From assembly GCA_964199315.1 (NCBI GenBank), contig OZ116704.1, forward strand, positions 22,072,001 to 22,136,000: a stretch of DNA of 64,000 bases, in the 5' to 3' direction. Below the pieces are notes generated by a model that searched no databases, had not been told where the DNA came from, and saw nothing but the letters and a program-made list of their open reading frames with translations. A program made the translations under genes and the position numbers. This DNA comes from Orbicella franksi (lineage: Eukaryota). This document shows, in pieces, positions 15,965-18,220 of the stretch; position 1 is the stretch's first letter; each line of letters begins with the position of its first letter.

Positions 15965-16303
15965 CTATACTAGCCTATTCTTGCAATAAATGCCAGCTAT
16001 GGTAAACCAACCATACTCTAACGGAATTAGTTTTATCCAAGCTTGGTGCCATCTAAGAGACTTGATTGCCTCTCGAAGTTCTGAAACAGCGCTGCTGCAT
16101 TTCCCTTTTAACATGATGATTTTGCGGATGCTGAAAACCACTTGTTCTTCTGGCAGCTCAGGTATATACACCCTGGGGCAAGGAACATTGTCCACGGTCA
16201 CTTTGAAAAATCTGTTGACACGTTTTAAGCTACTTCTCATAAATTGAAAGGTTGATAAAGTAATTTTGATTATCAATTTAAGTACATCGTTGTTTAAGAA
16301 GGG
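15965..16303 (-). pseudogene. Frameshifted continuation of the integrase-OTU gene, starting with a putative F-box-like motif
   Basis: PFLNNDVLKLIIKITLSTFQFMRSSLKRVNRFFK resembles the F-box pattern LPxEILxxIxxxL...LxxVxKxF. Confidence 0.35.
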
Positions 16304-17454
16304 CTGAGTACTGTGTCAACGTCACCTACGTCATCGTCAACGACATCTGCGTCATCATGAACATCACCTGCGTCATTGTGATAGTCACCTGCATCACTGT
16401 GAACGTCACCTGCGTCATTATTACCGTCACCTGCATTATTGTTAACATCACTTGCATCATTGTTAACATTACCAATGTCATCATTAACGCCACCAGCGTC
16501 AACATCAGAAGGGCCGGTATGGTCATCCGAGGTACTAGTATCGCTATTGAACTCTCGTATCAGACTCACATAACGTTCCCCATGATTTTCGGCAAAATGG
16601 CTGAGATAAACGGTAGCAAGAGGGATGCTCGATGATGGATGGAATACATGTTGTGCCCCAGCCCCAAGTGTAGATGCAATCTGGAGATCAATGTTGTATA
16701 GATTTGCTGCTGCAAACAATGTTAATTGATCGCCAAATGTGTTCTTTCTCGCCATATATTGAAGATATTCCTGCCAGGATGGAAACTCAGAGTCTACTAA
16801 GTGTTGTAAAAGTGGGAAGCCATCGTTATCAATTGGGTTATTTTGCAAATAGTCCACTATTTCTTTACGCATAGTTTCGGGAGATCTGAAAATACCTAGT
16901 GGATTTAACTGGTGGGCTAGAGCAGCAAATTGGCAGTTGCCATCTCCAGGTGGATTATATATAACTTGAAAACCCTGATGTTCTATTATCTTGGTGTAAT
17001 CTTCATGACTCATTATGAAATTAAGCTTTGTGCGGTGCATGGTTTTTTTCCGTTTGGATAACTTAGCAGCCTTTTGTTTACATTTTTCCTCCCGGAGGGT
17101 GAAACTTGTGATGTCATCCACGGACAGCCACTTCTTTTCACTTTTCCCTATGAGCAGGGAAGTGTACACAACTCTGTATGTCGGGGTTTTAACGTTTCTC
17201 TTTTCTAGTCGGGCCTCGATGACATGACGCCTCTTCTGCGCCTTTCCTGGCAGACGCACAAAAACCTTCTCTCCAACACTATACCTTGCAAGAGGATTTG
17301 ATCGTAATTTAGCTCTCTGCATTCGTCTGTCACAACGATTTGTGGCCTTGTGGGCCTCCTGTCTGAGTTGAGAGACATGTCTGCAGCGCCTCTTCCGGTC
17401 AGTTGCAGTGGGATTAATTCTGCCAGTATTAGCCACTAACTTGTTATCTGCCAC
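16294..17454 (-). pseudogene. Integrase C-terminal region, OTU-like cysteine protease and acidic repeat tract
   Basis: YSVGEKVFVR (integrase C-terminal-like) and PGDGNCQFAAL (OTU Cys box) are present, as are W.EYL..MAR..TFGD.LTL and FAENHGERYVSL, where the expected catalytic His is Arg. 21-bp tandem units encoding xxDAGDV-type heptads lie at ~16320-16500. Confidence 0.8.
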
Positions 17455-17479
17455 GCTTGTTTTGAAAGATTTGCACTTC

Positions 17480-18220
17480 CTGGCAAAGTAGACTTCAAAC
17501 TACTTCACTACCCTGGTCACTCTGAATTATAGTCGGAGGGCCGTGCTCCGTATAAATAGTCTGCAGTTCCTATGAGATGTCCTTGCTGCATTTTGTAGTG
17601 GGAGCACGAAGCCAAACAAAGCAGCTAAATACATCAATCACAGACAGCACATATCAATAAGACTTACCATTCATCTTCACAACTCCCATCTTCCCCATGT
17701 CCATTAAATCTATTTGATACCTTACTTGAACGTCTCGGGCATGAATTGGTTTTTTTGTTGCTTTATTAAGAAACTTCGCATTTCTGCGAACGTGGTTTTT
17801 GTCAGAATTCAGTATGTTTTGTACTCTTACACGACTCAGCCCGACATAATTTTCCCTCAATGAGCACACCAACTTTGCTGCACCTGATCCTTTTGTCCGA
17901 TCAAATTCGTCCCCGACAAGTTTGTTTATTTCTGAAGTTCTTAGCATCCGACGCCCTTGAAAATAAAGAATCTTTCCATTTCCTTCCTTTATCGTTATTT
18001 TCCCATCAGCTCTCCAATACCGTACACTGGCAGTTCTCTGGGCTTTTGTTCGTTCTTTTACCAGTGGTTGAGGCTCTCCCATGACAATTTTGATAAGGGC
18101 TTCATAAATGTCATCCGCAATTGCCGAAGGATTTCTCCTCCCTTGCCATTCATCAATACTGACGCAGTTGTGTACCAGGAATGTACAAACTAAAAGAGCC
18201 AAAAGCACTACACACTTCAT
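17480..18220 (-). pseudogene. rve-type integrase (KRBA2/SCAND3/Ginger-like) with hydrophobic signal-peptide-like N-terminus
   Basis: ORF 17654-18220 contains KPIHARDVQVRYQIDLMDM. In-frame read-through gives Y*YVLSVIDVFSCFVWLRA...S*ELQTIYTEHGPPTIIQSDQGSE. The region carrying the third catalytic residue is deleted. Confidence 0.8.

Follow-up and report, generated by a model that had tools for sequence, protein, structure and literature searches.

The window, a stretch of 64,000 nucleotides from the coral Orbicella franksi, carries on its minus strand (15965–18220) the wreck of one gene. In our reading, to which we give a probability of about three in four, it belongs to a dead copy of a Ginger-type autonomous DNA transposon that moves by cut and paste; the 5′ part of the copy was split by later insertions, and its intact relatives encode a transposase made of a leader, an integrase, an OTU domain and a tail.

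The decayed gene and the limits of the element

The remains of the gene follow the order hydrophobic leader, integrase, OTU, acidic heptads and F-box-like tail. They are listed below with the other parts of the element, in window coordinates.

15345–15349, no strand: left target site duplication, AAAGC, read directly and identical to 32877–32881
15350–15497, minus strand: terminal inverted repeat (TIR) at the 3′ end of the element, which begins TGTAGAAGG and bears AAATGTAATAA-type subterminal repeats (read directly, and similarity)
15965–16312, minus strand: C-terminal tail remnant, three F-box-like helices and then a beta/alpha/beta domain (tblastn against relatives, 57–75% identity)
16314–16467, minus strand: acidic heptad repeats, 21-bp unit, 7.3 copies (repeat scan)
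16294–17454, minus strand: open piece of 386 aa, comprising the integrase C-terminus (SH3-like domain), a linker helix and OTU (Pfam OTU, alignment to relatives)
17455–17653, minus strand: broken integrase catalytic core, second Asp (SDQG) retained (alignment to relatives)
17654–18220, minus strand: N-terminal open piece of 188 aa, comprising the leader, the N-terminal domain of the integrase (no zinc ligands) and the catalytic Asp of the QIDL motif, the first of the triad (ORF, alignment to relatives)
18158–18220, minus strand: signal-peptide-like hydrophobic leader, 21 residues (ORF start, hand-made measures)
18221–18805, minus strand: 5′ non-coding part of the element (own-genome DNA search)
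18806–32329, no strand: nested insertions (repeat and insertion analysis), comprising the next four
18806–19108: part of a repeat
about 19100–24900: DIRS/Ngaro-like retroelement
25536–29629: P-like transposon
31309–32329: LINE tail
32777–32876, minus strand: TIR at the 5′ end of the element, which ends CCTTCTACA (read directly)
32877–32881, no strand: right target site duplication, AAAGC (read directly)

The leader of the window copy consists of MK followed by 14 uncharged hydrophobic residues and a polar end. The ORF that it opens extends up to the QIDL motif, and the integrase core stays in the same frame through SDQGSE, interrupted by three stops (17654–17656, 17570–17572 and 17495–17497). 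A deletion of about 65 residues and a frameshift follow near 17468–17499. The deletion has taken away the region of the third catalytic residue, and the enzyme is left with its first two Asp but without the Glu. The OTU domain occupies approximately 16560–16950 (Pfam 32 bits against a cut-off of 23.3, E 2e-7), with the GDGNC motif near 16933–16947. Its catalytic His is an Arg (GERY, codon 16573–16575); the preliminary description of this DNA had put this change down to probable decay, in agreement with the His found at that position in 28 of 28 relatives. The tail remnant sits in a different frame (15974–16312) and ends at a stop codon (15965–15967), and its fold was taken from a structure model of a homologous tail. 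The window copy is dead and without function.

The same description had framed the gene with TIRs and a 5-bp duplication. Both are real, but they do not adjoin the ORF: the left arm starts at 15350 and the right arm ends at 32876. A scan of 14500–19500 for inverted repeats next to the ORF returned chance pairs only, and the true pair was recovered by similarity to the terminus of a related subfamily (A) together with a wider scan. Given this TIR pair, 15965–18220 covers the gene remains alone, the element being a 17.5-kb composite (15350–32876, minus strand) whose 5′ part has taken in about 13 kb of other mobile DNA, both retroelements and transposons. Its arms, TGTAG...CTACA, are 92% complementary over 76 nt, or over a longer stretch if one gap is allowed, and the right arm is shorter than the left by one 38-nt repeat unit. 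The 3′-end terminus and its repeats are common to the 5′ end of subfamily A and to the C1 copy. No second copy of the 5′ non-coding part was found in the own-genome DNA search.

Intact relatives and their place among Ginger-type transposons

Natural intact copies were used in place of a consensus for examining the single ORF and the leader. At least eight copies from three subfamilies of the same genome carry all domains in single, intronless ORFs of 852–947 aa, in the order leader (15–25 residues), integrase, OTU, acidic repeat linker and tail. The proposal that the separate segments of the window are one decayed gene is borne out by these copies, where the three form one ORF. The integrase of the relatives is a complete retroviral-type enzyme (N-terminal helical domain without zinc ligands, DDE core, SH3-like domain), the OTU cysteine protease has both its Cys and its His, and in the tail three F-box-like helices are followed by a small beta/alpha domain. 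A model of the whole protein (mean pLDDT 79) matches the integrases of foamy virus (E 2e-19) and of Ty3 in alignments of about 430 columns. Pfam rve and OTU (PF02338, above the gathering score) were matched by all 28 family members. In the alignment of these members, the second Asp (27/28), the Glu (28/28), the OTU Cys (27/28) and the OTU His (28/28) are conserved.

Three observations point to recent activity of the relatives: their copies are 97–99% alike, at least 10 deletion derivatives retain both ends, and for one insertion an empty-site allele is present in RNA reads. Every subfamily read has TGT...ACA termini (TGTTG in subfamily A, TGTTC in B, TGTTA in C), all with subterminal repeats, and inverted repeats of 100–250 bp. 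Among the target duplications surveyed, AAAGC in the window is one clean 5-bp case. The insertion at L049 has TATAAT (6 bp) or TATAA (5+1), a further 5-bp case needs 2 filler bases, and one flank pair shows no duplication. We infer that the integrase would bind the AAATGTAATAA-type repeats within the inverted repeats, cut at TGT...ACA and insert with a 5-bp, possibly 5–6-bp, duplication.

The earlier label of Ginger-like is upheld by the DDE enzyme of integrase type, by inverted repeats that end TGT...ACA and by the short target duplication. Three published groups come into consideration. Ginger1 elements (Bao, Kapitonov, Jurka 2010, PMC2836005) encode a DDE transposase, have 40–270 bp inverted repeats with TGTNR ends and occur in cnidarians and molluscs, and a C-terminal OTU or Ulp1 domain counts among their features, OTU being present in several families. 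The present family resembles them in its integrase-type DDE enzyme, in its OTU, in its cnidarian and molluscan hosts and in the TGTNR ends of the window copy and of subfamilies A and C (subfamily B having TGTTC). However, Ginger1 is also defined by an H2C2 zinc finger, by YPYY and GPY/F motifs and by insertion at CCGG or CCGT with 4-bp duplications (PMC2836005). None of these was found in the family: no Integrase_H2C2 match appears among its Pfam matches at E up to 5, residues 30–170 of the 28-member alignment contain one His column at ≥50% and no conserved Cys, YP[YF]Y occurs in 0/28 members, and the SH3-like domain lacks GP[YF] in all 28. In place of 4-bp CCGG or CCGT duplications there are AAAGC in the window and TATAAT or TATAA at L049, and the 5′-end flanks contain no CCGG. 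Membership of Ginger1 was rejected on these grounds.

Ginger2/TDD elements also have TGTNR ends, with 5-bp duplications in TDD-4 and TDD-5 of Dictyostelium, and lack GPY/F and YPYY (PMC2836005); the family shares the absence of both motifs and, subfamily B aside, the TGTNR ends, and the window copy has a 5-bp duplication. In contrast, published accounts give Ginger2 enzymes an H2C2 finger but no OTU, and animal Ginger2 elements make 4-bp duplications at RTATAY (PMC2836005), whereas the family has the OTU and lacks the finger. The terms signal peptide and F-box each occur 0 times in the Ginger paper (PMC2836005). GingerRoot/IS3EU elements (PMC6839031, PMC10045372) occur in corals and combine a DDE transposase without HHCC with 100–150-bp inverted repeats, TA...TA termini and 6-bp duplications; OTU has 0 occurrences in the GingerRoot/IS3EU paper. 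The family is like them in having inverted repeats and an integrase-related DDE transposase without HHCC, and in its coral occurrence, but every subfamily read ends in TGT...ACA rather than TA...TA, and this assignment was discarded too.

In our reading the family forms a Ginger-type lineage of its own, nearest to Ginger2/TDD but set apart from Ginger2 by the published descriptions. In language-model features, its N-terminal domain is nearest to KRBA2-like proteins (Atlas neighbour, 0.91), for which a previous study gives an origin from Ginger2 (PMC3575427). Named distant relatives, KRBA2 or GIN1 for example, did not turn up in a region-restricted protein search. Lying outside the published definitions of Ginger1, Ginger2 and GingerRoot, the family is of consequence for annotating repeats in the genomes of marine invertebrates.

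The N-terminal leader

The hydrophobic leader noticed in the window copy proved to be kept in its relatives. In at least eight subfamilies of this genome it opens at the first Met in frame, and at least 22 protein clusters elsewhere have a leader too (among their sources other corals, a snail and a sea urchin), one member being only 26% identical. In the family tree it is found on both sides of the midpoint root. One clade is leaderless (P0052, P0056, P0057, P0060, P0064, P0065), and members from a fish and possibly amphioxus are leaderless or N-terminally truncated. From these sequence comparisons, the leader is a conserved trait of the family and no accident of the window copy, and by its distribution it is ancestral to a family spread across cnidarians, molluscs and echinoderms. 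A leader resembling a secretion signal is odd for an enzyme required to work in the nucleus, and no paper was found in the literature on a conserved leader of this kind in a transposase.

Whether this segment is a targeting signal at all has to be considered. It could be a mis-called start or a by-product: translation might begin further downstream, or an exon upstream might supply the start, or the hydrophobic codons might reflect a constraint on the DNA close to the promoter. Most copies of subfamily B are indeed open in frame for about 60 residues further upstream, and several database relatives begin without a leader. Yet one B copy without the upstream Met begins at the leader, and in most subfamilies the leader Met, being the first in frame, stands 2–27 codons past a stop, which lends no support to the alternative starts suggested in the preliminary description. 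A downstream start fares no better in subfamily A: the next Met (residue 63) lies beyond the helix modelled at residues 39–49, the first conserved one of the N-terminal domain, which would be lost.

Splicing and alternative starts were addressed with four RNA runs (polyA raw reads, metatranscriptome contigs) mapped onto subfamily A. PolyA raw reads gave almost no depth and no clear sign of expression; the RNA-library contigs are unspliced and collinear with the DNA, and no joints were seen within the element, which lends no support to the alternative splicing also suggested earlier. Finally, the leaders of different subfamilies, whose proteins are 26–60% identical, have different sequences that cannot be aligned, while their hydrophobic character is constant, and the leader is present in three phyla. 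A mis-called start or a DNA-level constraint is accordingly an improbable explanation.

We lean slightly towards the leader being a real ER-type targeting signal, which would take one of two forms, a signal peptide that is cleaved off or an N-terminal anchor that stays in place. If it were a classical cleaved secretion signal, most of the protein would leave the cytosol, and the leader would act as self-restraint, with only a minor non-translocated or retro-translocated fraction of the enzyme reaching the nucleus. Signal peptides have a positive n-region, a hydrophobic core of 7–15 residues and a polar c-region with a cleavage site. Several properties, obtained by hand-made measures, fit such a signal: the n-region is mostly MK or MR, the uncharged cores of 9–20 residues (median about 15) are short for a membrane span, small residues are frequent ahead of the polar region, and an acidic flank follows the core in some clades. 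Against it, a K/R-rich stretch placed 1–10 residues past the core in many members favours retention of that side in the cytosol, and the alignment of 28 members has no conserved Cys pairs. Nor is any substrate known in the ER lumen for an integrase, for a thiol protease such as OTU or for an F-box-type SCF adaptor. We regard cleavage as rather unlikely.

The leader could otherwise be an uncleaved N-terminal anchor, by which the protein would pass from the ER to the inner nuclear membrane by lateral diffusion, its catalytic domains remaining cytosolic or nucleoplasmic. Such an arrangement has a parallel in baculovirus envelope proteins, with their N-terminal sorting motif, and would square the leader with nuclear and cytosolic partners. 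The basic patch shortly after the core in many clades is consistent with it, as are a best 19-residue hydropathy window above 1.6 in most leaders and a modelled disordered linker (residues 18–30) that separates the leader helix from the first domain. But most cores are shorter than a typical span, and the acidic flanks of several clades predict the opposite orientation, so that an anchor, too, is put forward with considerable doubt. Since the leader survives in recently moved lineages, it likely serves transposition or its control. As an ER-type targeting signal, it might direct the transposase to the membranes of the ER and nuclear envelope, or hold it there, and in this way control its access to chromatin.

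The C-terminal tail and a possible ubiquitin connection

The F-box motif proposed for the tail was weakly supported: F-box or F-box-like matches do occur in several members, but all are sub-threshold. Among six divergent tails, F-box or F-box-like is the top Pfam match of three (E 0.02–0.07) and the sole listed match of a fourth (E 0.74). As whole proteins, 6/28 members were matched by F-box and 3/28 by F-box-like, with a best E of 0.002–0.004. The gathering score of PF00646 or PF12937 was not reached, tail segments scoring 10–15 bits against cut-offs of 20.5 and 24.3. In structure searches, the tail matched the F-boxes of FBXO42, FBH1, FBXL2 and Skp2 at Z 3.9–4.5 (rmsd 1.8–3.3 Å, 14–22% identity), where Z 4–5 is within noise for three-helix units.

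The tail could instead be a family-specific helical unit joined to a winged-helix-like domain and serving DNA binding or transposase multimerisation, a reading to which we give somewhat less than an even chance. It would account for the low F-box scores and for the top match of a wide structure search (Z 6.0), which is not an F-box. A profile of the tail compared with solved structures gave no F-box at E up to 10, and Foldseek gave nothing at E <0.7; its weak matches to the second half of the tail, the best-modelled part (pLDDT 83–94), are winged-helix proteins (ESCRT-II, ArsR, AsnC, PCI). On the other hand, two motifs, LPxE(I/L)LxxI at the start and V(S/N)xRF(K/R) in the third helix, come back in subfamily after subfamily at 27–46% identity. 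Besides rve and OTU, only F-box/F-box-like, the one that most members share, and a weak PWWP (3/28) are common to several members. Among the helical matches, moreover, none has a lower rmsd or a higher identity than the F-box entries, and the nearest named Atlas clusters to the tail are F-box proteins (0.87–0.89).

The likeness to F-box proteins, the Skp1-binding SCF adaptors, lies in a three-helix unit with the LPxE(I/L)LxxI start and in weak sequence and structure matches. Unlike in those proteins, this unit is followed by a small domain of unclear kin rather than by LRR, WD40 or Kelch repeats, and it is fused to a transposase and a deubiquitinase. As judged from sequence, the OTU of intact copies probably removes ubiquitin, and the odds appear evenly balanced for docking of the tail on Skp1/SCF or some comparable partner. 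Such an enzyme would combine a ubiquitin-ligase adaptor with a deubiquitinase, the latter perhaps shielding the transposase from its own ubiquitination, and the element may modulate host ubiquitin signalling, as was suggested at the outset.

Taken further, this would give a membrane-tethered transposase whose release, stability or destruction is set by ubiquitin steps through its own OTU and SCF-adaptor tail, a built-in control of transposition that we consider a long shot. Leader, OTU and F-box-like tail nonetheless provide a testable case of a mobile element with its own link to the host ubiquitin machinery and to membrane targeting.

A CARD was also considered for the tail, from a profile match to the MDA5 CARD (E 0.055), and was dropped because the model places a confident beta hairpin in that region. 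The start of the F-box-like unit is itself variable: LN takes the place of LP in subfamily C and in the window's own tail.

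Pieces of the decayed gene and their intact counterparts

The preliminary description had read one decayed gene carrying a signal-peptide-like leader, an integrase core, an OTU domain, acidic heptads and an F-box-like tail. This reading was accurate, and all these parts were found on the minus strand:

17654-18220, minus: N-terminal ORF, 188 aa, starting with the leader and reaching QIDL
16294-17454, minus: OTU ORF, 386 aa, with an SH3-like and an OTU domain
15974-16312, minus: tail, reached through a further frameshift after the acidic heptads

The leader that opens the first ORF is hydrophobic and 21 residues long. 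QIDL is the first catalytic motif of the integrase, whose frame is interrupted by three stops and extends on through SDQGSE. Near 17468-17499 a frameshift and a deletion of ~65 residues have removed the HPQSQGKVE-type region of the third catalytic residue. The OTU domain scores above the Pfam threshold and keeps GDGNC, and its His is changed to Arg (GERY), as had been noticed. The acidic heptads that follow correspond to 7.3 copies of a 21-bp unit.

Protein searches of the same 497 Mb genome gave dozens of copies of the family. Three subfamilies, named A, B and C, include intact single ORFs of 852-947 aa, showing that the pieces belong to one ORF in intact copies, and Pfam rve and OTU were found in all intact relatives tested. 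Family traits were read directly from such natural copies. Compared with the window copy, subfamily A is 62% identical over the N-terminal piece and 55% over the OTU piece, and B and C are ~36-41% identical.

Copies are 97-99% alike within subfamilies, subfamily A includes at least 10 internally deleted derivatives keeping both ends, and an empty-site allele was present in RNA reads for one A insertion (locus L015, G000:C10:17347535), from which it follows that these relatives moved recently. Three RNA runs contain reads and contigs that, at the 5′ junction of that copy (L015:150-190), leave the flank at position 187 and go directly on into unrelated sequence, apparently the empty site. The sampled corals thus seem to be polymorphic for the insertion, which lies in a transcribed region. 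The window's own subfamily is represented elsewhere only by fragments (92-93%). One 93% relative (L002:1390-3390; G000:C1:41078062-41082401) has shrunk to ~2 kb, its OTU region joined straight to the 5′ inverted repeat.

Ends of the element and nested insertions

Termini begin TGTTG in A, TGTTC in B and TGTTA in C. Their inverted repeats are up to ~250 bp long, and subterminal repeats are present as well. No inverted repeats closely flanking the window ORF were found. A related subfamily's terminus matches 15351-15436, and an inverted partner arm lies at 32777-32876. The aligned arms share the start TGTAGAAGGCAC and repeats of the AAATGTAATAA type; the right arm is one 38-nt unit short. These paired arms, with AAAGC at both outer edges, define the element as 15350-32876. 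The inverted repeats and 5-bp target duplication described at first are thus real, but instead of adjoining the ORF the arms have their outer ends at 15350 and 32876. Duplication length is less clear for the family than its termini: 5 bp in the window element, TATAAT at a second locus (L049), none at the flanks of a third (L041), and at L002, with flanks ACACT plus GC versus ACACT, a duplication ACACT only if two filler bases are allowed.

Between the gene and the right arm, 18806-32329 is occupied by a split repeat, a DIRS/Ngaro-like retroelement, a P-like transposon and a LINE tail. The features are:

18221-18805: 5′ non-coding part of the element
19100-24900: DIRS/Ngaro-like retroelement
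20054-21013: its tyrosine recombinase
20962-22277: its RT/RNase H
22619-23584: its gag-like ORF
24429-24893: its SGNH-hydrolase ORF
31309-32329: 3′ part of a non-LTR retrotransposon (LINE tail), with a reverse-transcriptase ORF of 325 aa

A DNA search of the own genome revealed no second copy of the 5′ non-coding part, whose 18588-18660 segment is a compound microsatellite of GGTT, GGTA and GGGA runs. Segments 18806-19108 and 32325-32680 are two portions of a single ~1.5 kb repeat, 870 bp apart at G000:C1:10953406-10954949 versus 13 kb in the window, with the nested elements between; this repeat may be part of the Ginger-type element or itself an insertion. The retroelement end at 19100-20100 has 99% alike copies elsewhere. 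The LINE tail has more than 35 genome-wide copies at 97-100% identity, and its family is very young. Just beyond the right end and outside the element, a 131-aa minus-strand ORF (32955-33350) looks like a retroelement polyprotein fragment.

The intact protein, its leader and its tail

A natural protein of subfamily A was modelled with AlphaFold using 28 aligned relatives (mean pLDDT 79), and the model divides by residue as follows:

2-19: leader helix
18-30: disordered linker
39-150: N-terminal domain
171-330: catalytic core
354-389: long helix
400-448: beta barrel
487-637: OTU
641-739: disordered acidic region
744-854: folded tail

With Foldseek, the full foamy-virus integrase aligned over ~430 columns (E 2e-19), and Ty3 integrase was also matched. 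Among the 28 relatives, the second Asp (27/28) and Glu (28/28) of the integrase are conserved, as are the OTU Cys (27/28) and His (28/28). The alignment of these 28 members contains no conserved His/Cys ligands in the N-terminal domain and no YPYY or GPY/F motif, and Integrase_H2C2 is absent from the Pfam matches listed for the family.

The leader is a family feature of natural copies. In at least 8 own-genome subfamilies it starts at the first Met in frame, located 2-27 codons downstream of a stop; elsewhere it occurs in at least 22 protein clusters, including those of Littorina (P0083) and Lytechinus (P0103) and a member of only 26% identity (P0082). Leaders could not be aligned between subfamilies; their common form is an MK or MR start and an uncharged core of 9-20 residues. 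A property kept without its sequence is the pattern of targeting peptides, and the leader may be cleaved or may instead serve as an anchor. A K/R-rich stretch often lies within 10 residues past the core. After the leader, many clades have a K/R- and G-rich stretch (KGKGRG, GRGKR and KGG types; e.g. L045:472-600), which might act as a nuclear localisation signal, determine topology or be a processing site. The midpoint root of the family tree has leader-bearing members on either side, and one well-supported clade is without the leader; its distribution requires at least five changes, some of which may be truncated gene calls.

As to the possible F-box, we put its probability at about one half: Pfam and structure matches to F-boxes recur, but none passes the Pfam threshold and the top structure match is not an F-box. 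Of six divergent tails, three have F-box or F-box-like as their best Pfam match (E 0.02-0.07) and a fourth has it as its sole listed one (E 0.74), all below threshold. In whole proteins the F-box is outnumbered by rve and OTU alone and comes before PWWP, which is weakly matched in 3 of 28; the F-box matches are again below threshold throughout. Modelled alone from seven sequences (pLDDT 72 overall, 83-94 in the last 60 residues), the tail begins with three helices and goes on with a unit of strand, strand, helix, helix and hairpin; this second half weakly resembles winged-helix domains. In a wide structure search, no listed match had a lower rmsd or a higher identity than the F-boxes of FBXO42, FBH1, FBXL2 and Skp2 (Z 3.9-4.5). 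The best match by Z (6.0) was not an F-box, and small helical units commonly score in this range. Atlas neighbours of the tail include F-box clusters (0.87-0.89).

Known transposons and spread of the family

Ginger1 (PMC2836005) shares the OTU and TGTNR ends with the family but has a zinc finger, YPYY, GPY/F and a CCGG target. Ginger2/TDD (PMC2836005) has the same ends and likewise lacks GPY/F and YPYY, and TDD-4 and TDD-5 (PMC2836005) make a 5-bp duplication like the window element; the published description of Ginger2/TDD differs from the family in having a zinc finger but no OTU. GingerRoot/IS3EU (PMC6839031, PMC10045372) differs by TA...TA ends and 6-bp duplications. In the literature found on these three groups, neither signal peptide nor F-box is mentioned. 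The family is widespread, occurring in several corals, mussels, a snail, a sea urchin and a fish; an amphioxus match covers the integrase core only.
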